Origin: Ophelia neglecta
Taxonomy: Eukaryota
Direction: 5' to 3'
Assembly (NCBI GenBank): GCA_965285935.1
Contig: OZ260664.1
Location: forward strand, 25,730,001 to 25,794,000
Length of the DNA: 64,000 nucleotides
In this document: one piece after another, positions 19,077-63,259 of the stretch
Layout of the letters: every line of letters starts with the position of its first letter
Position numbering within the stretch: the stretch's first letter is position 1
Position numbers and translations under genes: made by a program
Notes under the pieces: model-generated
Told to the model about the DNA's origin: nothing
Databases searched by the model: none
What the model saw: only the letters and a program-made list of their open reading frames with translations

Positions 19077-19201
19077 CCAAATTCTGACATCTGTTGGAAA
19101 TGTGACGGCTCAGGAGAAGAAAGAAATGGCCAAGAACACTACACAACTACTAGACCAGCTGCTTTTGGGCTATGACAAGCGGCTCCGACCCGGCTTTGGA
19201 G
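19077..19201 (+). CDS. Grd: Grd coding exon 2 (SQILTSVGNVTAQEKKEMAKNTTQLLDQLLLGYDKRLRPGFGG)
   Basis: Acceptor ttttaatcatag|, donor G|gtgagt; canonical LD.LL.GYD.RLRP N-terminal helix motif of GABA-A-type subunits. Confidence 0.92.
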
Positions 19202-26765: not shown

Positions 26766-26833
26766 GGCCCGCCACGGTGGTAGACGTCAATCTTAATATC
26801 AGGAGTATGGGTCCAATCTCTGAGATAGACATG
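26766..26833 (+). CDS. Grd: Grd coding exon 3 (GPATVVDVNLNIRSMGPISEIDM)
   Basis: tgcag| acceptor and |gtgagt donor; 68-nt exon with the SMGPISEIDM motif typical of GABA-A-family genes. Too short for the ORF track. Confidence 0.92.
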
Positions 26834-29155: not shown

Positions 29156-29379
29156 GCTTACCAGATGGATTGCTATTTCCGGCAAAGCTGGGTCGACAAG
29201 CGTCTGGGGTTTTCCGGAAGTCCCATGAAGACTATGCCGGTCAGTATCAGCATATTGGACCGAATCTGGAAGCCGGACACCCATTTTTTCAACGGTCGAA
29301 ATTCCTACTTGCACACAGTTACATCGCCGAACAAACTGCTGCGCATCAATCGAGATGGCCGAATTCTGTACTCCATGAG
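29156..29379 (+). CDS. Grd: Grd coding exon 4 (AYQMDCYFRQSW...WKPDTHFFNG...ILYSMR; loops D, A, E)
   Basis: ctacag| acceptor, AG|gtaaca donor; matches ORF 29129..29383. Confidence 0.95.
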
Positions 29380-34784: not shown

Positions 34785-34867
34785 GTTGACAATAAAGGCA
34801 AGCTGTCCGATGCATCTTGAGTCGTTTCCAATGGACACGCAGTCTTGTCCACTCCGCTTTGGCAGTC
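34785..34867 (+). CDS. Grd: Grd coding exon 5: Cys-loop ([28 protein letters not shown])
   Basis: tttcag| acceptor, C|gtgagt donor; 83-nt exon carrying the C-x13-C signature. Confidence 0.95.
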
Positions 34868-41103: not shown

Positions 41104-41244
41104 ACGGATACGGAGTGAACGATGTACTGTACATTTGGACATATGGTGATCAAAGCTCGATAAAGATGGCGTCTGACATGACCTTGTCCCAGTTTGACTT
41201 GATAGGTATCCCTGCCGGAAATGAATCCAGCGAAAAGGCTGGAG
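41104..41244 (+). CDS. Grd: Grd coding exon 6 (HGYGVNDVLYIWTYGDQSSIKMASDMTLSQFDLIGIPAGNESSEKAG)
   Basis: ttttcag| acceptor, G|gtagga donor, phase 1-1; LSQFDL motif. Confidence 0.92.
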
Positions 41245-41452: not shown

Positions 41453-41611
41453 CGGGCCAGATTTACTCAACGTTATTTGCAAGTTTTATACTAAGAAGAC
41501 ACATGGGGTACTTCCTGATCAATGTCTATGTGCCTTCCAGTCTGCTGGTGGTCATCTCTTGGGTGGGCTTCTGGATCAACCGGGAGGCCACAGCTGACAG
41601 AATAGCTCTGG
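41453..41611 (+). CDS. Grd: Grd coding exon 7: loop C end, TM1 and TM2 up to 4' (AGQIYSTLFASFILRRHMGYFLINVYVPSSLLVVISWVGFWINREATADRIALG); last shared exon
   Basis: ttcttttcag| acceptor, G|gtgagt donor; matches ORF 41365..41640. Confidence 0.95.
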
Positions 41612-44600
41612 GTGAGTATACATTGTACACAAGTATATAGGCTCCCCATGTATCCATATTTCAGAGATGTTTAAATAAAGAACCATATTTCTTATATGGC
41701 GTACATTGCTCAATCTCGGGGATAACGTTTAAAAGCTCATTAGGCCCTAGATATAGAGAATTCATGGATTATACATATCTATGATTAGACACAATTCTAA
41801 GTTGAAAGTTCCAGTGAACTCTTATATCGAGATCTATCTGAACAGACGATAGTTGACAATTTAAAACGACACGATGCATTCATTAAAAACAATCAAAGAT
41901 AACAAAATTAGTGCATTGAAGCGTATTAATCCGCACTGGACTAGTAATGGGGTTACGACTCATGAATTTGTCTTCGTCGTGTACCTCTTTGGGCTTTTAA
42001 GGGTGCGTGTTTATTTGCATTCCCTCATAGTAATTATGAGTGCCTGTCTGTCTGTCCTACGCTGTAATTTCGACTAAATTCAATGAGAAGGAGGCTGTTG
42101 GGAGCTCCTTCGATCACAAAATTATGGCCAAGATTCATGTTGCAAATTTATTTAATATTTGTTCGGATTAAGCTTGGTTTTAGTCCTTATAATTGACAGA
42201 TAAAAAATACACGAACAAGATAAAGATTTTACATTTTAAGTTCTTGTTGCCATTGTATATAATCATTTTTCATTCTCTAATCATAAAGAATCCTGGTTGG
42301 GGTAGAAAAAATATATTTTATACTGCATTTAGATTTATTTAACAGCAATTATGCCGATAAATTCTGAGAAATGGTGGTAGTACTGAAGTACAAACCAAAC
42401 AAATATTGTGTTCAACGCGGGGGTTCAGCTAATTCTCCTCAGATAATCTGGCAACAGCTATGACATCATCAGTAGTAATAAAATGGTGATAAAAGTACGT
42501 ATCTGCAGGCTACAGACTTCACAGTTGCTAAATATATTTACTGATTAGCAGGATGTAAATTTGACTGGATGAAAATCTTATCCCGGAAATGTAATGATGT
42601 AAAATAAGCAATTTCATTTCCGGTTAGAACCTTATCTTGGGTTTGTGACGTGTGCTTACATTTTAGTTGTCTCGGCTGATTACATAAATGATCAGAATAA
42701 ATTATTTTCTGTAGAGGTGGAGTGGCCACATTGTTTATTCTATCCATGAATCGAGGAGAACTATTATTCCATTTAACTGCTGATGTATTGTATCCTGTCT
42801 GCCTCCGTTATGTCTTAGGTAAAACATATCAACACATGCCTAATATGTGTGTGTGTACAGTTCTGTAGCCTAAGTAGCCTCTAACCAATAGTGTAGGTTG
42901 GCAAAACGTATGTGTGCTCAGTGGGTGAGTGAATGATGTTGTTCAGAAAAATATGTTTATATTTTTTTTTGTAATTAAAAAAACCCTCTTCATGGAAACA
43001 GCATTATTTCTTCCAAGTCGTGTCGCTCATGCCATTGAAGTTTGTACCAAAAAAGGCGACATAGAAGGCACAGTACATCTGGCTTTAGAATACTTACACA
43101 TAGTTTCCTTCTTATATATTATATGGATATATACTAATGCCAAGGTAATGTTTAGAAATTGATTGAATATCTCTGCAATTGCGTTATGCCTTTTGTACAA
43201 TTGATGACATCCGGCGTGCTGCAATTCACAGTCCATTGGACTCCCTACTCTTCCCATGCATTGGCAAATTTTAGCAGTTTTCGAAATGTCAAATTTTCTT
43301 TAAAAAAAGTCACTATATCGATAAAAAATAAGATTAATTTAGAAGGAGACCAGTTTCAACTGTCAGTGATTTCTCTTAAGTTTTTGGGCTCATTGTCAAT
43401 GAGGGGATGATCTGCCCGTTGCATGCAGTTCACAGGATGAAGGGTCTAAGGTTTGAAAACTTCTCCGTTTCCACGTTGTCTTTAAGCAGATGAGTCGGTT
43501 ATTGATGATTGTGTAATACCTCTGAGATGAGGACTAGCACGCAATGGTGCCGAGTAAGCGGAATAAGGAATCAACTTACATGCCTTGCCAGAAAATAGGA
43601 TGATATCAGTTGGTCCACGCTTATGCATGGTTTGTTAGTGATATATTTTGGCAATTTTTTGTCAGTTATGTAGCTGAAACCGGAAAACTGCTTTAACTGT
43701 CTCGTTGAGGTCCTTCTCCTTTTTTGTGTTATCCTCAATCATTTTTTTGCCTGAGTTTTATATGGGTTTTATCTCTTCATATGCGATCAACGTACACACA
43801 TTTAAGGCGACTGAAAGGGTATTATAGATCAACATGGTTGATACGTAATATTCGCATGCTAGCTTGTTGCTATCGCATATCAGAAATGCTATATAGATAA
43901 ATCTTAATCATATTTAACCTACATCGGGGATTCTTCAAGAGAAAAAACACTTACCAATGTCTTACATGTATTATTAAACCCGAAGGCCTTCCTTGTTCTT
44001 GAAGATTTCTTACCTCTTTAATGGTTTATTCCTGGTTAATAAATTTGCTATGTATGTCGGGCATCCATTGGAGCTGTGTTTAGCCACCAATAAGCGATGC
44101 CTTCGTAACATGTGTACTGATTGCATCATGCTATGGATCGTGCAAAGTCGCCAAGCAATAGAAACCTTCTCTCTGAGATAACTTATAATTGAGAATGAAT
44201 AACATTTGTCTTAATAACATGTTTTCTGAAATAAGCAGAAAGAAATAGTACAATGGTGCTTATTCGATAACGGAATATATTTGAGACTTTTTTGTATTAT
44301 AATTACCTCCATGCTCCACCCAAACGCTAAGAATTATTCAACTGTATAGCCTTTCTTGGTCTGAACCTATATTCCTCAGTCCTAATGCGTGATACTATTC
44401 ACCGGTAAATTCCTTAATCAGTCCTGGCTTCTAGATAGGCCTATAGTGTTTTCCCCACTTGCGATTACAAATTATTACCGGTTGGAAAGAGTTAAAATAC
44501 AGAAAAACATTCCAATTCCGCTTTTCTGTTTTACCACAAAATTCCGGTAGTGAGTTGTCGTAAAGGAAGCGCCAAGAAGAAGTTTCCGAAATGTTGCCAT

Positions 44601-46399
44601 TGCAACCGTAAGCGAATTCAGGCGGTCTTCCCCGCTGGTTCTTTTTAGCTAGGTTGGGCCCAATATTGTTGCAGTCCCGAAATTAGGCACTAAGGAACAG
44701 TTAACACTATTGGACTATATATGGCACAGTTTTCTCACCAGAAAAGACAAAAAATATATTGATTTATCCTGCCATCAAATCACAAAGATGCTAAACCTAC
44801 AAAAATAGCAAAGACGTTTCCCGAACTTCTTCGAGCCTTCTACGGCAGAAGATTTTTGTGAGGTTAGTTATTTTCTAATGACTTCTTTTTAAACTGATGC
44901 CACTTTAATAATTCCTGTGATTAATGCATAAAAATACAGAAGGTTGAAAATTAACCATGTTTCATTCAAAATTCTTCAGTAAAAATTGTAGAAAAAATTT
45001 AAAGTGGTTCCACTTCTACTTTCGAAAGTAGGTGACATCGGATATATATGTTGACTATGTTGACCAAATATATTATTAACATATTACTATACCAGGAATC
45101 ATATATTATTAATATATAACTGTAATGTATGACTAAATTGACCAAGGTATTTTCTATACTAAATCTATAAATCAATTGCTAATGAGCAGTAATTAATTAA
45201 TATGAATTAATAAATAATGTAAATTAAACGATACAACTTATATATATATATATAAAATGTTCTTTATTTTTCAGGAAATAACGAAAATGTACAAAACTAA
45301 GAAATGCAAAAAGAAAGAGAGACCAAGGGAAGAAGTATATAAGAACTCGAAGACAAGAAATTGAATCGAATAAGCGTGCATGAGTAATATGTAAGAAATG
45401 ACAAGTAATATAAAGCATCATTTTAGTGATTTTGGTAAAGATTCGATCGTACATCATCTTATTTTTTCAAATTGTATAAATATTAAAGTTCAGATTAAGA
45501 CTTTCTTGTTGAGGATATGCCATTAATATATTTGTAATCTTGGGATAAATAAACGGTTTTAAGTTTCTACTTTTAGTAATATCTACAATAATATTGAATA
45601 CTGATATTAGTTATCCAGGTACGTTTCGTCGAGATTCTACACAAAGAAACTTAAACATAGATAATGACACAAATGACAGATCATTATCGGTGTACTAAGA
45701 TCATCTATGCGCTTCACAAGAGATTGATTATAATTGGCTATCTATAGCCTAGGCAGTCCCAGAAACAGACCGAGATAACCGTAAAACTATTGAGAAGGAA
45801 AATAAATTGTAATGAAAAAGAACGTTATAATGTTTTTTTAAGGAATATACGTGTAAATGGTGCCGAAAATAGTCCTGGTGTACAAGTAGTGGCGCATCGT
45901 GCATGCACAGGTATTCTTTTATTGAAACTACAAACAAACGCTACTTGGCTTTAAGTCACTCAGTCTCTGCATACGACAGGAGTGCTTTTGTTTTATTTAT
46001 TTGGTCCAGTTATCTAATTATTTGGCAATAGTGACATGGATTAATAATGTTAAGCATAACTGTGATGAAATAGATAGATAAGAAGGTAGTTTTAGTTGGG
46101 TATTTTACATCGCTATTAATACATGCAAGAAGGATGGCAGTGTAGATTGTTTTGTGTAGTTAATGTCTAAGGAATATTGTAGTGTGCTTTCTACCCACAA
46201 ATATATAATAACTTATTGAATTATGGTGTCGGTGCCTATTGTGCATTCTATTTTCTTTAACATGTTTAATGTGGTGCATTTTTATAAATAATTCGTTAAA
46301 ATTATATTCCTTTGCTTTCGACTAACATTTATTGTTTATTGTGTAATGGAATGCGTGTTAGATATAGTGTTAGCTTTCATAGTGCCTTTTTTTCTTTAG

Positions 46400-46632
46400 G
46401 AGTAACCACCGTTCTCACAATGGCTTTTCTGGGCATTGACAACAGAAGAGACTTGCCAAAAGTGCCCTACTCCACTGCTTTGGACTACTTTGTTGGCGCT
46501 TGTTTTGCGTTTGTTCTTGCTAGCATACTTCAGTTCGCCAGCGTTCATTTCTTCACAAAACATGGCAGCGGGGAAGTTTTTCTTGTGTCACCGGAAACAA
46601 CTGACGATGAATGTGAAGACGAGGCTGATAGA
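46400..46632 (+). CDS. Grd: Grd exon 8A: TM2 (T6'), TM2-3 loop and TM3
   Basis: tttttctttag| acceptor, AGA|gtaagt donor, 233 nt, phase 1-0; GVTTVLTMAFLGIDNRRDLPKVPYSTALDYF. Confidence 0.95.
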
Positions 46633-47372
46633 GTAAGTTTTTGTTGGTGTGACATTGTATTATATTACAGTTAAATTTTACATATATGAACACTGCTAAC
46701 GGAATTGGTTAATTATTAGCCTCTCTACAGATAAATAATTATTCCAACCTCCCTAGGTGCCAATATAAACTATTCTGAATAGTGTATTAATATAGTTCTT
46801 CTTAATATACTTCTTCCAAAAAAGTTCAACCGGCCTTCCCCTTCAGTTGGTAGATAGCATCTGTCATCGCGTCAAGCGATCAGCTATAGTCATTCCCTCA
46901 CATACCCCAGAATATTTGATTAATTACTGAAATATTTCCCCCAAAACAAGACGGCTGGCAAAAGCGTTTTCAGTAATGGCATAAAAACGTTTAATCAATC
47001 ACATAGTAACAGATAAAATAAAGACCCGCAAACTTCAGATTGGTCATCCCTACTGATTGTCGAGGAAATCTTAGAATAAAGTTGAATATAAAGTAAAGAT
47101 TAGGCCTAATTGTTATAACATGAGTAATTCCGCGATTATCATGCACCCTGTTACTCTGGTAATACAATTACAAAATTACATAAATGGTCTTTTTTGGCCC
47201 TACACTGCTGTTACCCCGATGATCCTTCAGGATGGGCTTTTTGGGGCGTGGCTATATCATTCGGTTATAGGCCTAAGCACAATTTATACATATTTCTGCA
47301 GCTGTAAAGTATTTGATATATGTCCGTGTGATATAATATGTAATAAGAAATATAAATTTGCTTTAATTATAG

Positions 47373-47753
47373 GAGCGCAAGATATTGATGGAAAGACGCA
47401 GCACGATGCCTATGGCGTCCACATCTTCTTTCAAAAACAGAGTCAGCAAAATGAACGGAGAAAGGACAAAAGTGGGCAGTATCTCGTCTACACAGTATAG
47501 AATGAGGCACGATTACAATATAAAACATCGAGCTTCTTTTTTATCGCAATTGTGGAACTGCTTGAAAGGAAGCTCAAAATATCGTGATTTCAAGTTGTTA
47601 GTGAGTTTTGATGGACTTAATAGTGTTAGTAACATCGATCAGGTAGCAAGGATTCTATTTCCTATAGCATTCTTAACGTTTAACGTTTTCTACTGGTTCA
47701 CCTATTTAGGTAGTTTAGATAGGGAGTCTCTCTCCTCCTTACTTAGTAGATAG
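47373..47753 (+). CDS. Grd: Grd exon 9A: intracellular loop, TM4 and stop
   Basis: taattatag| acceptor, phase 0; ERKILMERRS...NSVSNIDQVARILFPIAFLTFNVFYWFTYL...TAG. Confidence 0.93.
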   Translation, partial: ERKILMERRSTMPMASTSSFKNRVSKMNGERTKVGSISSTQYRMRHDYNIKHRASFLSQLWNCLKGSSKYRDFKLLVSFDGLNSVSNIDQVARILFPIAFLTFNVFYWFTYLGSLDRESLSSLLSR

Positions 47754-48356
47754 TTGTCGACGACTTAAGAAAATGAACATCAGAAACAATTCTAGTCCTC
47801 CATCAGAATGGGATGGTACTTGGGCGTAGGTGGCCTGCCTCCCCCGTCCATCATACTTGTAATAAATGTGATTGTGTACAAACAATTGCCCAATTTGATA
47901 AGGATCTTGCGGGGTGTGTGGAAAGGAGTAGTAGCACTTGACCCTATGCTTGGGCTTTACCAAATGATTTTAATGCGAGAGGAAGCCATCGTCTTAAAAA
48001 AATTGTGTGGGAGTTATTTGCAAGCTAGAATGGGATACTATAGCAAAGTAGGCATATTAAGAATAACAATAGTATAGAAACATTGCTAGTTTGATTAAGA
48101 TGTTGGGTCATTGTAATAAGTAAAAGTAAACACTCTAGACATAATCGGTTTTTTGTAACTTGATTAAATATGTAATGCACTTTAGCACTTTAGCTAATAA
48201 CCCCATGCACTCGCCGTCATCTCAATCTGTGCTTAATAATGTGTCTTAATAACTGTGTTTTCATAGTGACCATGCATCTTTCCATATCCTTCAGGTATGT
48301 AGCTGGTGAATAATATGTGGCCCCTATATTCACATGCATTCGAATGTTACTATTGA

Positions 48357-48362
48357 AATAAA
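48357..48362 (+). terminator. Candidate polyadenylation signal for isoform A (another AATAAA at 47861)
   Basis: AATAAA about 600 nt after the A stop. Motif only; common in AT-rich DNA. Confidence 0.3.
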
Positions 48363-48418
48363 ATACATGTATACGTCATCGAATTTTCATTATTTGTATA
48401 ATGACTTGCTTAGTGCAT

Positions 48419-48475
48419 CTTGACTTGGGGTAACTATATTTTGACTTGGGGGCAACTCCAGTTTGACTTGGGGCA
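48419..48475. repeat. Three copies of ttgacttgggg at about 21-bp spacing
   Basis: Seen directly; resembles a MITE subterminal array. Confidence 0.55.
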
Positions 48476-50765
48476 TGAACGGAAAGAGACTAGTCAGCTT
48501 AGTTGCCCACTTATAAGCAGGTCATTAATATTAATCGCAATTAAACTGGTACCCTTCACATTTGCACCGGCAGATGTCGCTGGTGCCAATGTATCCGGAC
48601 CAATGAGAGCCCTCAGGACAAATTAGGTTATAAAAAAGCGCAAAAAAAGACTACTTGGATAAGTCACCTCTGTCAGCACTAGGTAACTAGACCAAATTAA
48701 CAGCGATGTTTAAAAAATGTCTCAATATGATATCCAAATTCAAATTGCTTAGTGAATCACCGAATTAGTTCGTTTGTGACGAGATTTTAAAACAGTGCCA
48801 TGGGCTCCGGGCATAAATGCTTAAAATCAATGAAGTTTATTGGATGTACAAGTATCCGATATGCCAAATCTGATTTCTCGATTGGGGTTATCTAGTAAGT
48901 TAAGACAGGCCACGTTCCTTTGATTCTGTTAAGAGATCTTTTGGTGTATAAGTGTTTATATTGGTCATATATATATGGTGGACGACATTGAGTGTTTTAT
49001 TCTTCTAATCAAGAAGGAAATAAAGTGGATTCACGTACGCTATTTCAGTGGAGATTTTAATTTTGATAGCCATATCCAAAATTCAAATATATACAATTAA
49101 CCATGATAATCCCCAACAAAATAGTACGGTTCTAACAGCAAAAGTTATAACGAACTAAAATAATAACAGTCAAAGATAAACGAACAATGGGCACTGGGTG
49201 TCAAAGGTGTTACCCCCAAATTGATGATAAGGGCTATTGATCTGAGAACTAGGCTATTTGCAGCAATCCGTTAAATTGGCCTGTTAAAGGCAAATTTCTT
49301 TATTACCTGATATGTGAAGAAAAGAAAGTTTCTCATATAGTTTCTTTGATAGTTTTGTTTTGCTAAGCAGAATTTGACTGAACGTACTATGATTGAATTA
49401 TTGATCAGTTTGGTGGATACATTGGATAATTGACTCTAAATGTCCCCGGTCAACAGCGTTTCCCTGGGATGCCACGAAATCCTTCTATCAGAGTTATAAA
49501 TTTGTGTGTATAGCTTATCATATTATACAAATTTATTTGCATGTGTAGTTGAATAAGATTCAATATAAGTTCCGTTGTTATTTCTAATGTTTACTATGTA
49601 TCGTAGCTCGTCTTCGCCTCCGACTCAAGTTCTTTTATTGGCACGCTACACTAATATAGTATTTTTAAACAGCCGTGATAACATGGTTGTCGTTACCTTG
49701 GGCGTAGGATACACACTGACTTAACCAAGATACCCTATTGGTTGTGTTCAAACCGGTTATTTCTTAATAGAAAAAAATACAACGCAACGTTATATATACA
49801 ATTATGATGTGCATATAAATTTGGTAAGACATAAGAATTGCAAACTTAGAAACAGAAAAAGCTGCAAAACTAATACAAATGATAATAAAAAAAAAATTCA
49901 TAATGGCGCACTGGCAATATGTGGCAAAAGTATTAAAACACTTTTTTTAAAGAGATGTGAATCGTAAAAACAAATGACGTCTTCTTCTCAAACCAAAACC
50001 ATCTTTAGGAAAAATAAATAATGTCGTACACACACAAACACACCAAATCAGCCCTCGCCCTCGCCTTCCTCCTCTCAGCCATGAAAATAACTGCCCCTTA
50101 AAGAATTATATGAAGAAATCTATAAATCTATACATAAAGACAAATGATACGCAAAGTTCACTGAGAAAAGATTGTCTTTGACTAGCTAAATAATGTGCCA
50201 TGCGAGCTGGTTCGAAACTGAATTTTCAATTGCCACATTTACTAGAAAACTATTGTTTTATGCCAATCCATACGACTCAACATTTAATTGAGGATAAAAT
50301 ATGGTGGGACATTTGTAACAAATTTTAAAGTTTGGGACACGTTTCGTCAATAATTTCAATTTTGGATCGCTTCATATATATGCACTTGAGTTAGTCAGTA
50401 ACCACTCTTGTTATTCAACCTCCCCTTGAATATTGACTCACAATCACGGGTCTACGATGTGCTTACATAGATACTGCGACTTCAAAGCAGACCGGGGAAG
50501 CTTCATTGTAGTTTCAGTAAAGACGCCGTATGCAAACCATCCAAATGGGCATAGACACCTGTTAGACAAACAGTATGTTAAGTATTGGTGAAGTAACTCA
50601 TAGTCCACCGTATTGTTTGTATGGTAAAACGGAAGTTTAGGTATGTGCCCATAGAAATGTTTGTTGATCCGCCTGACTCTATATGTAATAAGTTTCTCGT
50701 AGTATTTTAATATTGGTAAGCAAATGTTCGAAATATGAAAGGTTCCACCTTTTATGTATGGTGAA

Positions 50766-50977
50766 TGTCATATAATACTTACCAGGTTATAATATATATA
50801 CTTGCCCTGTACTCCCCTGGGCTGGTGACGTCGCGGTGTCGGATGTCACGTGGGGACGCTCTAGTGTGTGAGCAAGCCGTTAGCCATTCTAGTGACCACC
50901 GGTGATTTGTACCTATCCGAGTTACATGAAAATAAACTCTATTGTTACCTGCCAATGGGCTATCGATCTTCATTACA
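50766..50977 (+). repeat. Outer element 5' LTR
   Basis: Direct repeat of 60212-60423; TG...CA ends; AATAAA at 50931. Confidence 0.97.
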
Positions 50978-50990
50978 TGGTGTCAGAAGT
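50978..50990 (+). promoter_or_regulatory. Primer binding site TGGTGTCAGAAGT (tRNA-Leu type)
   Basis: Immediately follows the 5' LTR; complementary to a tRNA-Leu 3' end ...ACTTCTGACACCA (recalled). Confidence 0.85.
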
Positions 50991-51124
50991 AATCAGGAAC
51001 ATTGTGATCGGATATTTCTTAGTGTGGAGGATCAATCGTACCGGAATTCAGTGTGACTTTGTGACCGCTGTGTTTTTGTGTGTGTGTGTGTGTGTAGCCT
51101 ATACTAGCACACATAACCTACAGG

Positions 51125-52089
51125 ATGGCATTCAAGGCACCAACACCAGACACCTTCAACTTCGTGAAACCGGAGACATGGCCGGAATGGAGGGACAGAT
51201 TCAAGAGATTCAGGACAGCCGCGAAACTGCATAAGGAGGAAGGACACATACAGGTTTCTCAATTAATTTACTGTATGGGGTCACAGGCAGAAACTATATT
51301 TATGACATTCCAATTTGAAGAAGAAGCCCATAAGACTAATTTTGACCAAGTTTTGACTAAGTTTGACAACCATTTTGTCCCCCGCAGAATCCAAATGAAT
51401 GAAAGGGCTAGATTTTTTGCTGAAAATCAGAAACCGGAGGAGAACATTGAAACTTTTGTTAGGCGTCTGTATGAACTTTCTGAATCTTGTGACTTCCCAG
51501 ATAGGGATAACACTATTCGTGACAAGTTAGTTTTAGGAATGACTGACAAGGAGACATCACAGAGATTACAAATGGATGATGATCTTGACCTTAATAAGGC
51601 CCTCACCACGGCAAAGCAGGCGGAATTAGTAAAAACGCAGATGAGGGAGCTACAAAAATTGCAGATAAATTCAGATGTAAATGAAATTAAGAAAAAGAGT
51701 CGACATTTTGGGAAGAGAGACAGTGCTCAGGGAAGAGACAGTGCCCAATATAGACGAAGACCACAGGGTCAACAGGAAGTTGATCATTGTGGGAGATGTG
51801 GCACAAGTCATCAGAGGGGAAAATGCCCAGCCAAAGGTAGGAAATGTTACGGCTGTGGAAATTTCAATCATTTCAAATCCCAATGTAAGTCGAGATCACA
51901 AGGTCAAAGGAGAAGGCTACATGAAGTCACAGAAAATTTACCAGCCAGTGTAACTAACCCTGAGCAGCAGAGCTATGTGCCGGAAGAATTTTTCATTGGT
52001 GACCTGACTCATACAGGAGACAAGGAGCCATGGTATGTTTTACTGGAAGTCTGTAAGACCACAATCAAATTCAAAATTGACTCAGGGGC
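51125..52089 (+). CDS. gag: Outer element gag plus N-terminal part of protease, interrupted at DSG-A
   Basis: ORF 51125..52213 is Gag-like with two zinc knuckles and FKIDSG; residues after 52089 derive from the inner LTR. Confidence 0.9.
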
Positions 52090-52284
52090 TGTCACGATAG
52101 TCCGCATTTTGGTTCATCCGTCTTTTGTAGTGCGCACAGTCATGTTCCGACTTTTGTATCAGTCCCCTGGTGGTTCCGGTTTGTCACTTCCGCCCAAGCT
52201 AAAATACAAATAAACATCTCATAAAATGTTATGAGTTTTATCGTCTCACATCGAAGACTTATTCAACAGAGACTAAACGTTACA
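52090..52284 (+). repeat. Inner element 5' LTR
   Basis: Identical by eye to 56824-57018. Confidence 0.97.
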
Positions 52285-52324
52285 TGGTGTCAGAAGCTGG
52301 AGAAAACTTCATAGATTCTTCAGG

Positions 52325-55300
52325 ATGGCAGTTGCAATCAATCAAAGTGTTCCATTCCCGGAAAAACTCAATTTAACAGGAGACCTGAAAGGTCAGTGGG
52401 AGTATTTTATACAGTCATACAAGAACTATGAGATAGCTTCACGTGTAAAGGAACAACCCATGGAGGTAAGGGTTTCTACTCTGCTGTCATGCTTCGGGAA
52501 GGAGGCATTTAAAGTTTTCAATGCCCTAACATTTGAGGATCCAAACCACAAGAAACAATTTGACAAAATTGTGGATAAAATGGAACTGTATTGTGTGGGA
52601 GAATCCAACGTTATTTATGAGAGATACATCTTCAATCAGCTCACTCAGAAGGGGGAAAGTTTCGATGCATTTCTGACAGAACTGAAAAATCAAGCACAGA
52701 AATGCACTTATGGAACCCTTGAGAATGAACTGATTCGAGACAGAATTGTAGTTGGTGTGAAAGATGATTCTCTTAGAAAGAGACTTCTACAGGAGAAAGC
52801 ACTCACACTAAACCAATCTGTTACAATGGCTAGGGCCTATGAGCAAACATCACAACGACTTCGGGACATGAAGGCTACAGATCAGCAGGTAGATGCTATC
52901 TCAAATAAATCTACAATTAATAACTGTAAATTCTGTGCTGGCTCCCACCTTCCCAGCAGAGAAGCATGCCCAGCATGGCAGAAAGTATGTGCTAACTGTG
53001 GCGTTAAAAACCACTTTAGTAAGTGTTGTAGGCAAGGTAAAGCACACAAAGCACAAATTTCACAGGCTGCCCCCCAGCCAAGAAAATCCACACCCAAGAG
53101 GAAATCCAAATCTGGCCGGCCCATACGTGCACTCGACGAGGAGCTGGAACAGGACATTCTGCACCTCACTGTTGCTTCCCTCAGCAGTCAGTCACAGGTC
53201 AGGGCTGAAATGAAAATACAGAACAGTGCTATAAAATTTACCCTGGACACCGGAGCTTCTGCCAACGTTTTATCACAGAAACAGTACTTTCAAGTAGGCG
53301 GTAGGATGGCTGATCTTGAGCCTTCCTCCATCCTGTTAACTACATACACTGGGGAAAATTTCAAACCTATTGGACAGAAGGTACTTACCGTCACAAATCC
53401 ACAAAATGAGCAGAATTACCGTGTGAGATTCCAGGTAGTAGCCGCTAACCTCAAACCTATACTCGGATCCAGAGCTTGTCAGGCTATGAACTTAGTAACT
53501 TTTAATGTACAAAACATCCAACAAATCAATGAACCTACTGATCCTTTGGTGCGCTTCAAGGACGTGTTTGAAGGTGAGGGATGTCTTCCAGGTCAAGTCT
53601 CACTTACCGTAGATCCCTCTGTCGCGCCATCTCGCCAGCCTCCCCGTAGGGTCCCCATTGCCTTACGTGATCCTGTCAAAGCTGAGATTGACCGTCTGGT
53701 TGACCTCGGTATCATCGAACCAGTTACAGAACCTACTGACTGGGTGTCTGCTATGCTAATTGTCAAGAAGAAAAATGGGAACCTTAGGATCTGCATAGAT
53801 CCACGACCACTGAATGTTGCTTTGAAGAGGAGTCATTATCCATTTCCTCCTGTGGACGAGTTGATGTCTGACTTGAGAAAAGCTAGGGTGTTCACTGTCG
53901 TCGACGCCAAGAACGGTTTTTGGCATGTCAAACTAGACGAGGAGTCTAGCAGGTTGACAACTTTTACCACACCTTGGGGTCGATTTAAGTGGACAAGACT
54001 TTGTTTCGGAATATCGGTCGCCCCCGAACTTTTTCAGAGAAAAATGCACGAGGCCACCGAGGGTCTCTCTGGAGTTCGAGTCATACACGATGACACTATC
54101 ATATGGGGCGAGGGAGACTATGATGACGAGGCTCTCCGCGACCATGAAAAAAATCTAACTGCCTTTCTCGCTCGATGTCAGGAGAGGGGAATCAAGCTGA
54201 ATAAATCTAAGATGGTACTCAGAAGCCCTCAGGTCAAATTCATGGGCCACATTTGGTCCAAATCAGGAGTCTCACCAGACCCATCAATCATCGAAGCCAT
54301 CACCAAGATGCCTCCTCCTACCGACAAGAGCGGTGTACTTCGTCTGTTAGGAATGGTGAAGTACGTTCAGAAGTTTCTGCCAAACTTATCAGCAATTACA
54401 GCTGATATCAGAGAACTTTTACAAGATGACGTTCAGTTTGTTTGGGACAGTGCAGTGCAGGGACAGGCATTTAAAAAAATCAAACAGATCCTGACCAGTG
54501 TACCTGTACTGAAATACTTCAATCCAGAGAAAGAAATTCGACTTCAATGTGATGCCTCAGAGAAGGGCCTGGGAGCAACCTTGCTCCAGGATAATCACCC
54601 AGTGGCATTTGCCTCACGCGCCCTCTCCAAGGCCGAGGTAAATTATGCCCAGATTGAGAAGGAACTCTTAGCTATCGTCTTCGCATGCGAGAGATTTGAA
54701 CCCTTCATTTATGGTCTGCCAGTATCGGTGGAGACAGACCACAAACCCCTCGAGATCATCGCGAGGAAATCTCTTATCACGGCTCCCAAACGCCTCCAAC
54801 GCATGTTACTTCGCCTCCAGAAATACCAGTTGAACATTCAATACAAGAAAGGAGAAGATATGCTCCTAGCTGATCCACTGAGCTGAGCCTATCTCAAGTA
54901 CGATCAGCGTACACCATGTCAAAATGACGACATTTTGTCACTTGAAATAGCTTCAATCCAAATGAAAGACTTTCTCGCCATGTCTGAAGCTAGAATTGAG
55001 TCAGTGAAACAGGAAACGAAGGCTGACCCTGACCTCACATTTCTCACACATGTTGTACTTCAAGGGTGGCCGGACTCGTCGGCAAACTTACCCGAGGAGA
55101 TCAAACCATACTTCCAATTTCGCGAGGAGCTCTCATATCAGGATGGGCTTCTATTCAAAGGAGAGAGACTGATTATTCCAAAGTCGGCTAGGCATGACAT
55201 AATTGCCACTCTCCACGAGGCTCATCAAGGGATACAAGCTGCTCTTAGAAGGGCACGTGAGGTCGTGTACTGGCCAGGTATGCACTCAGACTTGGAAAAT

Positions 55301-56365
55301 CACTTCAAATTGTGCTCTACTTGCTGTTCTATGAACACAGCTCAGCAGAAAGAGCAAATGATCCCTCATGAAATCCCCTCCAGACCTTGGCAAAAGGTTG
55401 GTGTGGACATTTTTGATGCCAAAAACCAGTCTTATCTCGTCTGTACAGATTACTACTCGGACTTTTTTGAGATCGACAATCTGGCAGGTTCTAAAACTGC
55501 ACAAGCTGTGATCAAGAAACTCAAGGCACATTTTGCCAGACACGGCATTCCTTCAGAGGTAGTATCAGATAATGCCCCCTTCGATTCTAGAGAATTCCAT
55601 GAATTCTCCGAAAGATATGATTTCAAGCACACTACCTCATCGCCGCATTATCCTGTCTCCAATGGAAAGGCCGAGAATGCAGTAAAGCAGGCCAAATCTA
55701 TTATTCTCAAGGCCGAGGATCCATATCTAGCCTTGCTTGCCCTCCGTAATACCCCTACGGAAAATATCACTTTGTCACCTGCACAGCGCCTGTTTGGAAG
55801 GAGGACCAGGACAACGTTGCCGACCAAGGCAAATCTGTTGAATCCACTCCAGTCTGCTAGTCTGTCTGTTCCAGGAAAACTGGCAGAAAGGAAGAACAAA
55901 CAGTCGTTCTACTACAATCTCCATGCTAAGGATCTCCCACCACTCAGTCCCGGAGATGTGGTGAGAGTAAAGCCTTACGGGTCAAATAAACTGTGGAAGA
56001 AAGCAATTGTCAATTCACAAGTTGACATTCGCTCATATCAGGTCACTACAGAAGACGGTGCAGTGTATCGTCGTAATCGCAATCATCTGCGATCATCGCC
56101 TGGAGAGAATTTCCAACCAGCACCCTCTCACGACCTAATAAATGAGCCACCGTCCAGTGCTCTCCCACAGCTGGCACCACCCCCGATGTCACCAGTGCCA
56201 GTCGACCAACCCGCAACTAGCACTCCACCCCAGTCTGAGAGTGCACCTGCACCTACACTTCAGCAGACAGAGTCACCTAAATTGGGCAATAACAAACTGC
56301 CCCTTCGTACAAAATCTGGCCGAGCTGTCAGGAGGAATTTCGACCCTAACTTCGTATATCAATAA
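52325..56365 (+). pseudogene. gag-pol: Inner element gag-pol single frame, broken by one in-frame TGA at 54884-54886
   Basis: ORFs 52325..54886 (Gag, LDTGA protease, RT IHDD, RNase H) and 54935..56365 (integrase) share a frame. The stop replaces the conserved Arg of AD.LSR, probably CGA>TGA. Confidence 0.9.
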
Positions 56366-56823
56366 GTTTGCATAATTCATAACTCTGTATAATGTTTAGG
56401 TAAAATTTTAAGTATTAAAATAGTTGACGTTTGGTCTAGAAAGACATTTAAGCCATGCTACCTTGCAGCCATACAGCTGAAGACATTTAATTTTTCCATA
56501 TTAACTTTCAAAGACACTGAAATAGACTGTCAGATATATATTTGAATGTTTATTGAGAAAGCAGTTATAGTGCATGATTTAAAGACACTCGAAGGACTTT
56601 TAATTTAAGCCAAAGTTAATTCAGTAACAGTTCTTGGTATTTGAACAAGTTTAGCATTAATTAGTATAAGGTGTTTTACAATTCATCTTTGTATACTCTA
56701 AAATTTTTAAAGGTTCTAGATTCAAACCTATATGTTTTAAGTACAGGCTATCTACAGTGTTTGATATTGATTGTTAAACATATAATTAGTATGTATCTTT
56801 AAATGTCTTCTGAGAAGGGAGGA

Positions 56824-57018
56824 TGTCACGATAGTCCGCATTTTGGTTCATCCGTCTTTTGTAGTGCGCACAGTCATGTTCCGACTTTTGTATCAGTCCC
56901 CTGGTGGTTCCGGTTTGTCACTTCCGCCCAAGCTAAAATACAAATAAACATCTCATAAAATGTTATGAGTTTTATCGTCTCACATCGAAGACTTATTCAA
57001 CAGAGACTAAACGTTACA
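56824..57018 (+). repeat. Inner element 3' LTR
   Basis: Identical by eye to 52090-52284. Confidence 0.97.
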
Positions 57019-57023
57019 GGGGC

Positions 57024-60018
57024 TGATGTTAATTTAATATCCAATGACATGTATGAGAAAATGGAAGAACCACCCACCTTAACCCATAGTGACAATGAAC
57101 TACGAGGCCCAGGAAATAGTATTCAATGTGCTGGATACTTTATAACAGAAGTAGTTCACAAAGGAGAGAAATACCCATTTAAAGTCTATGTAAGTCCTGC
57201 AGTCAGTTCATCCTTGCTGAGTAGAGAATCAGCTGTGCGTATGGGTATGATTATCAGAGTGGAAGAAATAGTGGCAGAATACAGTGACTGTTATGGAAGC
57301 AGTGGACTTGTTAAATGCACTCCTGCTAAAATTAAACTAAAGGATGGGGCAGTGCCTTACAGTATACCTTGTCCATACAGAGTACCATTTCCATTACTGA
57401 AAGAGGTGAAGGTAGAACTGGATAGGATGATCAAAGATGACATTATAGAGGAGGTCAGTGAGCCTACTGAGTGGTGTGCATCAATGGTACCGGTGCTAAA
57501 GAAATCTGGACAGGTTCGAATTTGTGTGGATCTCAGGAAATTAAATACAGCTGTTGAGCGGGAAAAACTTATCATGCCAACATTAGAAGATATCAGTCCA
57601 AAGCTTGCCGGCTCAACTATATTTTCTACTCTCGATGCCAGCTGTGGGTTTTGGCAAATTCCACTTGAGGAGGCTAGCTCTCGCCTCACAACTTTTATTA
57701 CACCTTTTGGCAGATTTTGTTTTAAGAGAGTTCCATTTGGGCTCAGCTCAAGTCCAGAAATTTTCCAAAAGAAGATGGGAGAAATTTTTGATAATCTAGA
57801 AGGTGTGGAAGTTATCATGGATGATGTGCTAATCCATGGAGCTGGTGAACAAGACCATGATAGACATTATAGTGCAGCAATGCAGCGCGTTCGAGAATTA
57901 GGCCTCAAGTTGAACGCCAAGAAATGTCGGTATAAGAGAACTGAAATTCCATATTTTGGTCACGTTATGACTGAAAATGGAGTCAAAGCCGATCCGGTGA
58001 AGGTGGAAGCTATTATGAAACTCGATCCACCGAGGGATGTCGGCGAGTTAAGGCGTGTCCTGGGAATGGGTGCCGCTTTGCTAAATTTTATGGAAGGAGC
58101 GGCAACAGAACTAGCACCTCTGACAGATTTGCTACAGCAAGACAAAGGATGGCATTGGGGAGCGGATCAACAAAGGGCGTTTAACAGATTCAAGCACCTT
58201 GTTACAAATGCTCCAGTTTTAGCTTTTTATAGTCATGACAGGGAAACTGTGGTCACAGCTGATGCGAGCAGCTATGGACTCGGGGCTTCTATTCTTCAGG
58301 TCCATGGGGATCAGCTGAAACCTATAGCTTTTGCCTCAAAGAAGTTATCCCCAGCAGAGAAAATCTACGCGCAAATAGAGAAGGAACTTTTGGCAAGCGT
58401 GTGGGCATGTGAAAAGTTTGAGAGGTATCTAGTTGGTCTTCAGTCCTTCAGACTACAGACTGACCATAAGCCGTTGATTCCACTTATAAACAAACAGGAC
58501 CTCAACAAAGCACCGCTACGTTGTCAGAGATTTTTAATGCGTTTGATGCGCTACAATCCAGTCGCAGAATATGTACCAGGAAAGGACCTGGTCATAGCAG
58601 ATACCCTATCAAGAAGCCCGACTGGAAGTGAGAAAGAAACCAGCGTGTTGGAAAGTGACACACATCTGTACGTGCACAGTGTCATTTCTACCAAGCCTAT
58701 CACAGGTGAATGGATGTCTAAGCTGAGAAAGGAAACAGATAGTGATGCTGTAATGAAACTAGTAATTCAGATAACAAAAGCAGGGTGGCCAGAGAACTAC
58801 GGTGAAATAAAGGAATCACTGAAGCCTTATTTTGCGGCTAGAAACAGTTTGTCAACAGCAGAAGGACTGCTTATATTTGAGAACAGAATAGTGGTTCCAA
58901 AGGTATTGAGAGCAGAACTTTTGAGAAAACTACATGAGGGACATCAAGGCATCACCAAGTGTGGAGAGAGAGCAAAAACTAGTGTGTGGTGGCCTACAAT
59001 TAACAAAGATATTGCAGAGACTGTGGCTAGCTGTGAGTTTTGCCAAACTCATAGGGCAGCCCAGCGAAAGGAGCCTTTGATTCCAAGCAAATTGCCAGGA
59101 CGACCAACCCAGAAAGTGGCTGCAGATTTATGTGAATACAATGGGAAAAACTATCTGGTTGTTATCGACTACTATTCTAGGGACATAGAATTTCCCTATA
59201 TGGCCAACATCACGAGCACAAATCTGATAAGCAAATTCAAATATATCTTTGCTCGCTGGGGCTATCCGGAGGAATTATTCACGGATAATGGTGGACAGTT
59301 CACTTCTATTGAGTTCGAAAATTTTTGTGATTTATATGGTATTAGACATGTGACCTCGAGTCCGCATTTTCCCCAGTCAAATGGAATGGCGGAGCGTGGA
59401 GTTCAGGAGGTAAAGAAAATACTGAGCCAGCCAGATCCCTTACATGCATGGCTCGTATATCGCACAACACCAGGACCACTGGGGTGGAGCCCTAGTCAGC
59501 TCAACATGGGACGTCAGCTGAATAACACTCTACCAACGCTGCAGCGCAACTTAGCACCAAAATGGCCGAGTAGGCAAGCTGTTCAGCGTGCAGACAAACG
59601 ATATAACTTCACATATAAACAGTCGTATGATCGTCGCCATGGAGTGAGAATACTCCCAAGTGTCAAACCCGGAAACATGGTCAGAGTCCGAATAGACTCT
59701 GATAAAGTTTGGTCCAACCCTGTACCAATAACATCAACTCACAGCACACCCAGATCATTCGTGGTACAAACACCACAAGGAGGTGAGCTGCGGAGAAATA
59801 GGCGCCATCTACAAATGCTTCCAATTCCAAAACCTGGAGAGCCGCCACCATTGCCGCCATTACCTGTACCAAACCCACCTACGACTCAAACGGTTGCTAC
59901 ACATGACACCGGTGGAACATCACCGCAGCACCCGTCAGGTTTGGTCGGTCCAATACCAGGTACTCCAGTTGTAACCAAAAGTGGACGCGTAGTCAGACCG
60001 CCACTGAGATATCAATGA
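57024..60018 (+). CDS. pol: Outer element remainder of pol (PR C-part, RT, RNase H, integrase)
   Basis: RICVDLR, IMDD, ADASSYGLG, TDHKPL, integrase HHCC and D,D,E region, C-terminal TKSGR. Joining 51125-52089 to 57024-60018 gives one 3960-nt open frame (1319 aa). Confidence 0.93.
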
Positions 60019-60211
60019 CAGTTAATTTATATAAAGTGTATTTTAAAATTGGTGTAATTTCTATTTTTAAATGGCAGTGAAACATTACGGACTTCTGGTG
60101 TATCTGAAACAGAGACATTTGTAAATTCATTTTAAAGTAAATCATTTAAGTAAGGTTCAAAGATATTGGACATTTTAAAGTTTAATTTGTTTAAATACTT
60201 GGAAAGGAGGA

Positions 60212-60423
60212 TGTCATATAATACTTACCAGGTTATAATATATATACTTGCCCTGTACTCCCCTGGGCTGGTGACGTCGCGGTGTCGGATGTCACGTGGG
60301 GACGCTCTAGTGTGTGAGCAAGCCGTTAGCCATTCTAGTGACCACCGGTGATTTGTACCTATCCGAGTTACATGAAAATAAACCCTATTGTTACCTGCCA
60401 ATGGGCTATCGATCTTCATTACA
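60212..60423 (+). repeat. Outer element 3' LTR
   Basis: Direct repeat of 50766-50977, preceded by PPT and followed by TSD GTGAA. Confidence 0.97.
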
Positions 60424-60430
60424 GTGAATA

Positions 60431-60586
60431 CAGTGGAACCCCTGATGAAAGACCACCTAAAAATGGTCAAAATAGCCTTTTTTGCAAAACGGTTTGCTAA
60501 ACCGGCCATATATTGCAACCCCTGATGAAAGACCATCCCTCTTATAAGAGCACTTATTAGGTGGCCTCTCATGAGGGGTTCCGCTG
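60431..60586. mobile_element. 156-bp MITE, Tc1/mariner (pogo/Tigger-like)
   Basis: TIR CAGTGGAACCCCTGATGAAAGACCACC / GGTGGCCTCTCATGAGGGGTTCCGCTG with TA on both sides; internal extra copy of cccctgatgaaagacca. Confidence 0.85.
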
Positions 60587-60737
60587 TAGCTGTAATGTGG
60601 CCAAGTTATTATTGTAAATATTGCATGTTGTGGAATGACTACATTAATGAAAAACGTTCAAGGAAAATAAATAAGCACATAGGCCTAAATGATAATTAAG
60701 TGTGATATGATTTCAATGTATTTTACATCTTTTGAAG

Positions 60738-60970
60738 GTGTTATGACCGTCCTTACGATGGCTTTTCTTGGCATTGAAAACAGGAGAGACTTGCCAAAAG
60801 TGGCATACTCCACTGCTTTGGATTACTTTGTTGGAGCTTGCTTTGCCTTCGTTCTTGCTACGATCCTTCAGTTCGCCGGCGTGCATTTCTTTACCAAACA
60901 TGGCAGTGGGGAAGTGTTTCTTGTTTCTCCAGAAACGACCGATGATGAGGATGAAGATGAGGCGGATAGG
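60738..60970 (+). CDS. Grd: Grd exon 8B: alternative TM2 (M6'), TM2-3 loop and TM3
   Basis: catcttttgaag| acceptor, AGG|gtaaaa donor; same 233-nt length and phases as exon 8A; GVMTVLTMAFLGIENRRDLPKVAYSTALDYF. Confidence 0.92.
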
Positions 60971-61647
60971 GTAAAATGAGCATTACCATACGCACACTAA
61001 GACAAAATAACAGGAAGAATTCCATAACAGATTTATTAGAAAACAAACACATTTGTCTTTAAATACCTTTTAGACTAAATTAATAAAGTCTGGTTCCTTA
61101 CAAAATTCATGAATGAAATTGGTTGAGTCCTTCTGGCTAATAACCATAGCCTCCCTACATCTATTTCTGCACCACTGGTCTACAAGGAAGAATGCATGTC
61201 ATTTGCTGGATTTCTGTCTTGGCCTAGAATTTATTAGTATGCCTATGGTTGCATTCACACCGGTGTTGCGGTGCAGTAATTAACGCATTTTTGCCGAAAC
61301 GACTTGTGATTTTGCTTTTAAACAGATTATATTAGGCTTTAGGCACTAAAACTCAAAAGACGATGCATTTGCAAATATGTCGATTGTAAAGAAACTGATG
61401 TCAGAATTTAATCGAATTTCCTCAACAAATACCTTTCTGGTGCCTTTAGGCCTATAACTGTTTTATTGCTTTTACGTATTGCAATCACTTTTGAACATGT
61501 TTTGTTCCTATTTCGTAAATAAATTTACTAAGCATTGTGCTCGCGATCCAAATGTGCATAAGTATACTTTATCGTCTTGCTGAGTTAATTTCTTCATATG
61601 TAACCCATTTTTTCATTATACCATTAACTGTTTTATTCCTTACATAG

Positions 61648-62052
61648 GAACGCAAAATCCTTATGGAGCGTCGAAGTAGGATAGCAACTCCTTCTGCCGT
61701 TACTCCTCCACCTACTCCTCTGCCGGGAAATCTGAACGGAGCCATTGCCCTGCTGGCCTGTCGGACCACCACAATGGCGCGCAGAATGAGTTCCCGTTCA
61801 GCCAGGCAATACGAAATGAGTATGATGGACAATGTCAGATCAAGTGATAACTGCTGGTCTAGGTTTTGGAATTGTCTGAGAGGAAACACCAACTATCGGA
61901 ATATGAAATTGCTGGCAAGCCATGGAGGACTGAACAGTGTCAGCGTGGTTGATCGGTTAGCGAGGGTCATGTTTCCTGTATCTTTTGTGGTTTTCAATGT
62001 GCTCTACTGGGCGGTATATCTGGAAGGCCAGTCGCTTGTCACCATGTTGTAA
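61648..62052 (+). CDS. Grd: Grd exon 9B: alternative intracellular loop, TM4 and stop
   Basis: ttccttacatag| acceptor, phase 0; ERKILMERRS...NSVSVVDRLARVMFPVSFVVFNVLYWAVYL...TAA. Confidence 0.92.
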   Translation, partial: ERKILMERRSRIATPSAVTPPPTPLPGNLNGAIALLACRTTTMARRMSSRSARQYEMSMMDNVRSSDNCWSRFWNCLRGNTNYRNMKLLASHGGLNSVSVVDRLARVMFPVSFVVFNVLYWAVYLEGQSLVTML

Positions 62053-62481
62053 CGAAATCTCCTGTTTTCAAAGACATATCAACTCATCAATTGTACCATG
62101 ACTATGCAACGATTCTCTATTTAATTTCAATATTTATTTAAACTAGGCTATAGGTGAAAAGCATGATGAATCAATGACGTACAAGTAGACGTCAATTCTC
62201 ATTATTGTTCTAAGACTTCGGAAATGGCCGATTCATGCACACCATCCTATCGGACTTCTAGGCAGACGACAGCGTGGGACGCCTAGTCTAACGGATTTTC
62301 TTAAACTAATCTCCTGGTGAGACGTAATGAAAATGTGAGGACCTGTTGTGTGATAGTTTCACTACGCCAATGTAATGTGAAAATTTTATCAAATGTTTGT
62401 TTCAGTCCTTTACTGAATAACAAGTGTCCCTTTATGACGCTGACTCTTACAATTACCTGGTTTATTAGAATTAGAATACAA

Positions 62482-62503
62482 AATAAATTGCTTTTACAAT
62501 AAA
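62482..62503 (+). terminator. Candidate polyadenylation signals for isoform B
   Basis: Two AATAAA at 62482 and 62498, followed by T-rich sequence, about 430 nt after the B stop. Confidence 0.35.
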
Positions 62504-63259
62504 GTATGCTCTTTTTGTAGCTTTTATACCATAGCTCAAAAAATGACCTCATGGTTCCATCAACTATATCATTGAGTTACATTGACTTGTTGAGTCCTTT
62601 GTATTCTTTATTGTTTATATTGTTATCTCTTGACTCTAATGAATAAGCAATATTTAATTAGGAAACAGTATCAGCTTGCTTGGAAAAAGTAAGCGACGGC
62701 GAATATTTCGAAACAATTTGATTCGAATGATAAACAAGAAAACATAATTATGAGGAATATATGTGAATATGTGGAAACAAAATATAGCGTGTTTTTAACA
62801 AATAAGCAATGTTGAATAGGGATACCTGAACACATTTGATCTGAGAAGCCAAACATGAAAGAAAGCATAATTTTTCTAAATCAATTTTCCAAATATTGTG
62901 AATTTGTTTCGGATTTGGAAGGCATAATATCTATGAATTACATGCTTCTGCCTTGATTATAGCGGCTGAAATCTTATACTTTATACATACAGCCTCTCTC
63001 TCTCTCGCTCTCCAAATTTAAATTACTCTTGACTTTACTGACTTTTATATCTGGCCATGACCCAAATTTTATACTTTTGCATAATTCAAAGCCAGTAAAC
63101 CAAACAAGCAGAAAGATTCATTTCATTTTTTAGGAAATAAAACAAAAGAAATTTACAATTTTTTACTGAGAAGCTTCTAGCCAAAAATTGGGAGGAAACC
63201 GTTTAAAACTGTCATATTAACGATGTTAATAAAGCTTATAACTCCCTATCAGAAACCTT

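Follow-up and report, generated by a model that had tools for sequence, protein, structure and literature searches.

A GRD-like receptor gene of Ophelia neglecta with one ligand-binding domain and two candidate alternative pore/C-terminal cassettes

We analyzed a stretch of 64,000 nucleotides (nt) from the annelid Ophelia neglecta (NCBI GenBank assembly GCA_965285935.1, contig OZ260664.1, positions 25,730,001 to 25,794,000 of the forward strand), hereafter called the window, which is C7:25730001-25794000 of the 762-Mb genome, C7 being the label of the contig that holds it. The window contains a GRD-type Cys-loop receptor gene on the + strand, in which the exons for the binding domain and the first transmembrane segment (TM1) occur once and the last two exons, numbered 8 and 9, occur twice, as cassettes A and B. 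The upstream exons were located by tblastn with full-length relatives from Lingula, Lineus, and Ridgeia, their boundaries and phases were fixed by eye, and the searches were run exon by exon. An initial annotation of this DNA, made from its letters alone, had counted seven shared exons in a single copy; we found six coding exons before exon 8, starting with the ATG at 19009, and each of them is indeed single-copy. The exons of the gene, in window positions, are as follows.

19009..19201, + strand: first coding exon, with the ATG (inferred start), a hydrophobic signal-like stretch, and the beginning of the binding domain; ends in phase 1 at a GT donor; located by tblastn
26766..26833, + strand: binding-domain exon of 68 nt; located by tblastn, with AG/GT borders and phase
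29156..29379, + strand: binding-domain exon of 224 nt, single copy; Pfam Neur_chan_LBD, E 2.7e-13
34785..34867, + strand: Cys-loop exon of 83 nt, C-x13-C with FPMD (34804-34848); Pfam Neur_chan_LBD
41104..41244, + strand: exon of 141 nt that closes the binding domain, loop C region; located by tblastn and its boundaries
41453..41611, + strand: last shared exon (exon 7 of the initial annotation), with pre-TM1, TM1, and the start of TM2 (-5' through base 1 of the Gly 4' codon); donor G/gtgagt; Pfam Neur_chan_memb, profile positions 1-29
46400..46632, + strand: exon 8A, TM2 from 4' (Thr at 6'), TM2-TM3 linker KVPY, TM3, and an acidic tail; strong T-rich acceptor
47373..47753, + strand: exon 9A, cytoplasmic loop, TM4, and stop; AATAAA 108 nt past the stop
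60738..60970, + strand: exon 8B, length and phases as in 8A, Met at 6', linker KVAY; weaker acceptor (...cttttgaag)
61648..62052, + strand: exon 9B, Pro-rich cytoplasmic loop, TM4, and stop; first AATAAA 430 nt past the stop

The encoded protein has the features of a Cys-loop receptor, namely a ligand-binding domain with a C-x13-C Cys-loop and a four-TM Neur_chan_memb region with a pore-lining TM2. The relatives that best cover the window exons (from Ridgeia, Capitella, Lingula, and Lineus) retrieve insect GRD or "alpha-like" proteins at E ~1e-120, and the best matches among solved structures are alpha subunits of the γ-aminobutyric acid type A (GABA-A) receptor; exon 8B could be aligned to TM2-TM3 of solved GABA-A alpha1 chains. 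GRD has been described as a subunit without the PAR motif before TM2, carrying Ala-Asp-Arg in place of Pro-Ala-Arg (PMC2064938). Exon 41453-41611 likewise reads ATADR, with no PAR, at -4' to 0', and its C-terminal residues are REATADRIALG. The best hits and the missing PAR motif assign the gene to the GRD / GABA-A alpha-like group. Subunits of this group are known to form GABA-gated (cation) channels together with an LCCH3-like partner.

All four cassette exons have AG acceptors; GT donors follow 8A and 8B, and a stop closes each copy of exon 9. Exons 8A and 8B, 233 nt each, open with the last 2 nt of the Gly codon that is interrupted after 41611 and end in phase 0, and both copies of exon 9 start in phase 0, so that the junctions 7>8A, 7>8B, and 8A>9B are all in frame. 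We thus re-found every cassette coordinate, the common 233-nt length, the phases, the splice sites, and the separate stops of the initial annotation, together with its in-frame 8A-to-9B splice, which would permit a hybrid isoform. The split of the Gly 4' codon at 41611 also bears out its placement of the switch point inside TM2, with the whole binding domain constant. The junction peptides read ...IALG-VTTVLTM in A and ...IALG-VMTVLTM in B. Each cassette exon matches Pfam Neur_chan_memb, 8A and 8B at profile positions 31-85, and 9A and 9B up to position 233. Simple arithmetic on the coordinates gives predicted products of 493 residues (A) and 501 residues (B); these replace the 484 and 492 residues proposed earlier, and the gap of 8 residues between the isoforms is retained.

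A scan of both strands of the window, which contains no N, gave one Cys-loop motif only. As the initial annotation had stated for the interval between the cassettes, tblastn with the full-length relatives found no binding-domain or TM1 exons in 47754-60737, and it found none in the window after 62052. In the whole-genome search, no second exon 4 or exon 7 was found near the locus. A separate set of upstream exons for B, which would have made B part of an ordinary tandem paralogue, was thus looked for in the window and the nearby chromosome, and none was found. The genome-wide search with exons 8 and 9, which extends beyond the end of the window, returned A and B as the only close copies of these exons, with no third cassette downstream.

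We compared the two cassettes with each other. Exons 8A and 8B are identical at 71 of 77 amino acids (92%) and share 85% nucleotide identity, while 9A and 9B share 42% amino-acid identity, with TM4 and a pre-TM4 motif retained and the silent sites saturated. The exon 8 copies differ by 29 synonymous and 8 non-synonymous changes, which corresponds to a synonymous divergence (dS) of ~1.0, a non-synonymous divergence (dN) of 0.046, and a dN/dS ratio of 0.045 (Nei-Gojobori; Fisher P 8e-16). The introns flanking 8A and 8B are unalignable, at the ~32-35% identity of random sequence, and the likeness ends at the exon edges. Since the flanking introns are at random identity and the silent sites differ, the similarity of 8A and 8B is maintained by selection on the protein and not by recency. 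The saturated silent sites of exon 9 and the unalignable introns likewise mark the duplication as old. Gene conversion of the whole exon, as another source of the likeness between 8A and 8B, was ruled out, because the silent sites differ and the replacement sites do not. Judged by these codon comparisons, both cassettes have long been kept by purifying selection on the protein.

The few replacements within the conserved exon 8 fall at several sites of the channel. In TM2, A has Thr and B has Met at 6', and A has Asp and B has Glu at 17'; the TM2-TM3 linker reads KVPY in A and KVAY in B (Pro versus Ala); and two positions differ in TM3. The cytoplasmic loop, TM4, and the tail come in a separate version for each cassette, the loop of B being Pro-rich. 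The silent divergence is uneven along the cassettes. In the TM2-TM3 core (46402-46587 versus 60740-60925), 32% of the codons for identical residues differ, and this share rises to 61-89% over the tail of exon 8 and in exon 9. The pattern could stem from an earlier conversion event in the core of exon 8, or from splicing signals that constrain the silent sites.

To examine variation over cassette B, Logan contigs of three DNA runs, all of one sample, were placed on 60150-62650 at 90% identity. As a result, a second haplotype was found over cassette B, in which 20 of the 21 listed coding differences are synonymous, versus 23% expected at random (P ~3e-12). All 11 differences in exon 8B are synonymous, as are 9 of the 10 listed in exon 9B, the other being an Arg>Gly replacement in the variable loop, and no indels lie within the exons. 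The silent-site divergence between the two B haplotypes is ~13-19%, which points to a deep coalescence. Since 20 of 21 differences are silent, both B lineages have been strongly constrained through this deep coalescence, and the status of a long-dead relic is, on this coding record, untenable for cassette B.

The haplotype comparison gave some further observations. The deep divergence extends over 60587-61824, with ~4-5% of the exon bases and ~10% or more of the intron differing and with a 24-nt indel between the haplotypes at 60661-60686; over 61825-62650, a single form only was present. The intron of the alternative haplotype lies mostly beyond the 90% placement, and the one piece of it that was placed is ~10% different. 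The ratio of the two forms varies across the three runs of the one sample (~1.3:1, 1:2, and 1:2.3), which would be unusual for one diploid individual.

These substitution patterns also bear on the possibility that the cassettes are only partly used, either with 9B serving 8A as an alternative terminal exon (the hybrid) and 8B rarely used, or with A decaying and B as the main cassette. The in-frame 8A>9B junction would allow the former, and in the exon 8 tree, all of the amino-acid change falls on the A branch, with an end branch of 0 for 8B, in a tree built from a single exon. Against four outgroup annelid exons, neither cassette copy is consistently faster, and the single-exon trees, which are not resolved, place A and B as mutual nearest rows without support. 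Partial use is nevertheless quite improbable in our view, since the 11 synonymous and 0 non-synonymous differences between the 8B haplotypes read as those of a translated exon, and the 8 non-synonymous changes between 8A and 8B are far fewer than the estimated ~50 expected on one neutral branch.

We thus favor, with a probability of roughly 70%, the reading that this is one gene in which an ancient tandem duplication of the last two exons has produced two functional alternative 3' cassettes, which would give rise to two subunits. Use of both cassettes is favored because the splice sites, phases, and stops are intact, both copies are under purifying selection, and no separate binding-domain exons accompany B. 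The initial annotation had proposed that alternative splicing or polyadenylation yields two subunits, and this proposal is now supported in part: the anatomy is as described, and the selection on both cassettes and the compatible frames favor their use. We infer the splicing to both cassettes, its regulation, and a functional difference between the products.

In the mechanism that we propose, the shared exons encode the signal peptide, the whole binding domain, TM1, and the mouth of TM2 on the cytoplasmic side (-5' to 4') with the charge-selectivity region ATADR. The donor at 41611 would be joined to 8A and then to 9A, with polyadenylation close behind; alternatively, the A acceptor would be skipped and the A poly(A) site read through, and the donor would be joined to 8B and then to 9B. 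The choice would thus be one of alternative last-exon usage, in which each cassette brings a separate terminal exon and stop and, presumably, a separate poly(A) site. The stronger acceptor and proximal position of cassette A would make it the default. The two subunits predicted in this way would have identical binding sites and would differ in the pore lining, the gating linker, TM3, the cytoplasmic loop, and TM4.

Several observations weigh against two functional cassettes in a single gene. The runs that contain cassette B are the three DNA-like runs of one sample, and none of them is recorded as RNA. The acceptor of 8B is weaker than that of 8A. The protein search with 9B gave no fragment-size match, a result that the length window of the search makes uninformative. 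The haplotype table leaves 7 variants unlisted, and one low-depth, X3-only contig has 10 differences at unlisted positions. The block of sense-oriented long terminal repeat (LTR) elements between the cassettes, with its own termination signals, could curtail read-through to B on this haplotype. Finally, at the five annelid loci compared (Ridgeia L001 and L006, Capitella L002, the ENA metagenome contig L003, and Paralvinella L007), which are orthologous or paralogous to the Ophelia gene, no second cassette was found within 8-10 kb downstream, and all five of them have a single cassette. The initial annotation had suggested a comparison of Grd loci in related species, and these five loci gave no support for conservation of the arrangement across species.

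The interval between the cassettes proved to contain what the initial annotation had described, namely about 3 kb of AT-rich DNA, nested LTR elements, and a miniature inverted-repeat transposable element (MITE).

47754..50765: AT-rich spacer of 3.0 kb, with no receptor-like coding matches
50766..60423, + strand: two nested LTR retroelements in sense orientation, both with long open reading frames, gag-like and pol (reverse transcriptase, RNase H, and integrase)
60429..60588: MITE of 160 nt with 35-nt terminal inverted repeats

The LTRs of the outer element, 212 nt long, carry 3 mismatches, and those of the inner element, at ~52090-57018, carry 2; the target-site duplications, perfect and 5 bp long in both cases, read GTGAA (outer) and GGGGC (inner). 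Because of the near-identical LTRs and the matching target-site duplications, both elements are taken as very recent simple insertions, which deleted nothing. Before these insertions, the distance from the 9A stop to the 8B acceptor was 3.3 kb. Removal of 5' exons of B by the transposable elements (TEs) was ruled out, as both elements have intact target-site duplications.

The interval is relevant to two other explanations of cassette B. In one of them, B would be the stranded tail of a formerly complete tandem paralogue that has lost its 5' exons and gives no productive mRNA, so that the signals of selection are historical. Such complete tandem paralogues are found in Paralvinella (P0159 and P0161, 79% identical), the young TE block ends just upstream of 8B (9.7 kb in length and 315 bp from the exon), and the lack of any RNA-recorded run among those containing cassette B would also agree with a silent tail. 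The loss would, however, have to be very recent, as the B haplotypes have diverged by ~13-19% at silent sites with one amino-acid change and no stop or frameshift. Moreover, the target-site duplications mark the TE insertions as clean, so that they deleted nothing, and the 3.3-kb pre-insertion spacer has no trace of a degraded binding-domain exon. We therefore regard a stranded tail as unlikely, if less so than the partial use discussed above.

The other explanation, that of an assembly artefact in which A and B are alleles or distant copies joined via repeats, draws on the 9.7-kb repeat block and the high-copy MITE between the cassettes and on the great heterozygosity of the species. The saturated silent sites of exon 9 and the unalignable introns, however, far exceed allelic divergence, and B has two haplotypes of its own. 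There is also no N in the window. Furthermore, the GTGAA duplication is present on both the A side and the B side, which ties the two flanks to one molecule; in a false join, it would arise by chance in ~1 of 1000 cases. An artefact of this kind is thus very improbable.

With A and B taken as two 3' cassettes of one gene, the closest known system is unc-49 of C. elegans and Haemonchus, in which a common N-terminus is spliced to one of three tandem C-terminal copies, and the isoforms co-assemble (Bamber et al. 1999, as reported in PMC8841521). The analogy drawn in the initial annotation, of a shared N-terminus and tandem C-terminal repeats, agrees with this account. In addition, UNC-49B has Thr and UNC-49C has Met at 6', a difference linked to picrotoxin resistance according to bioRxiv 10.1101/2025.10.30.685166, which cites Bamber 2003. 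The Ophelia gene thus resembles unc-49 in its shared N-terminal exons and tandem C-terminal cassettes, and its cassettes A and B have the same 6' Thr/Met contrast. Unlike the Ophelia gene, unc-49 is RDL-like and has three cassettes, each of which begins before TM1 and contains all four TM segments (as in the read-through models P0062 and P0136). The Ophelia gene is GRD-like and has two cassettes that switch at TM2 4', so that TM1 and the selectivity filter are constant, and it would represent an independent lophotrochozoan origin. Furthermore, the splicing of unc-49 is proven, whereas that of the Ophelia gene is predicted. Orthology of the Ophelia gene with unc-49 was ruled out by the GRD-like best hits and by the start of the cassettes at TM2 4'. 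We consider, at slightly better than even odds, that a lophotrochozoan counterpart of unc-49, a modular GABA receptor with regulated 3' cassette choice, evolved independently here, with the 6' Thr/Met contrast converging on that of UNC-49B and UNC-49C.

Two further Cys-loop receptor genes are comparable. Nematode avr-14 (GluCl alpha3A/3B) gives rise to a pair of forms with different channel and intracellular regions (PMC8841521); it belongs, however, to the glutamate-gated chloride channel subfamily and to another phylum, has another switch point, and was verified by cDNA cloning. The alpha6 subunit of the insect nicotinic acetylcholine receptor (nAChR) has mutually exclusive tandem exons 8a, 8b, and 8c that change pore residues of TM2 (PMC2064938), and thus shares with the Ophelia gene the tandem duplicated exons altering TM2 of a Cys-loop receptor. 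In nAChR alpha6, these internal exons rejoin a common 3' end, whereas the Ophelia cassettes each carry their own terminal exon and stop. The insect GRD proteins (Drosophila Grd and Tribolium Tcas_GRD) are of the same subfamily by best hits, with ATADR replacing PAR, but the variants of Tribolium GRD are small loop C insertions made by alternative splice-site use, whereas those of Ophelia would be whole pore/C-terminal cassettes. We found no published description of alternative pore/C-terminal cassettes in GRD genes. The novelty claimed in the initial annotation would therefore be confined to Grd and would not extend to the overall design, which is already known from unc-49 and avr-14, nor to the choice of TM2 exons, known from nAChR alpha6.

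If both cassettes are spliced, the gene would be an independent case, outside the nematodes, of one ligand-binding domain kept while the channel half is swapped, and the first case found for the GRD subfamily. It would be a natural chimera in which the charge-selectivity filter is constant and the 6' position, gating linker, cytoplasmic loop, and TM4 vary, with possible effects on pharmacology, gating, and trafficking. The repeat of the 6' Thr/Met contrast of UNC-49B and UNC-49C would then be a case of convergence, and a single GRD-type gene might encode both subunits of a heteromer, or else provide different cell types with their own channels.

The position of the TM2 intron is common to the annelid orthologues examined, and the placement of the switch point inside TM2 is a mere reflection of it. 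An intron at this place in TM2 is generally known from GABA-A and glycine receptor genes. The silent sites are saturated between the O. neglecta gene and all of the annelid loci compared, and A and B are nearer to each other than to these loci; because of this saturation, the duplication is undatable from them. With a single cassette at each of those loci, the cassette duplication looks specific to the O. neglecta lineage; for the closest relative, L004, the sequence is a contig of 3.7 kb and stops immediately past exon 8. The two genes P0159 and P0161 of Paralvinella palmiformis are complete, GRD-like, and in tandem, and they represent a whole-gene duplication and not one of cassettes. The searches with Lingula P0009 and Ridgeia P0171 returned no Ophelia neglecta proteins or annotated isoforms among their matches, and a JGI metagenome scan with 9B matched only TM4 of unrelated contigs.

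Duplicated exons were also noticed in receptor models of other animals. The collembolan GRD models P0155 (Folsomia candida) and P0156 (Orchesella cincta) contain, at residues ~230-340, the TM1 exon twice in succession, in diverged copies that both end in ...REATADRV(T/S)LG; these look like tandem copies of exon 7 that were read through by the annotator and are probably mutually exclusive. In Hyalella azteca P0075 (KAA0198218.1), two consecutive copies of the TM2-TM3 exon occur in one protein at residues ~55-190, and these are likely duplicated alternative pore exons annotated as both included. Annotators tend to drop distal cassettes or to read duplicated exons through, as in Hyalella P0075 and the collembolan GRD models.

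The MITE upstream of 8B has hundreds of genomic copies: there are 648 candidates, the 40 scored are 85-92% identical, and the word depth is in the thousands. The inner 90 nt of this MITE also form a tandem array at C5:94998219-94999322. A second GRD-like paralogue lies on the same chromosome as the gene described here, at C7:102587428-102593869 on the - strand, with identities of 84% in exon 4, 76% in exon 7, and 71% in exon 8, and with a single exon 8 match. The Cys-loop receptor repertoire of the genome is very large, with at least 154 Neur_chan_memb matches (150 of 472 candidates scored), mostly on C7, C2, C8, C12, and C5, and it includes tandem clusters and several genes with the entire TM region in one exon.

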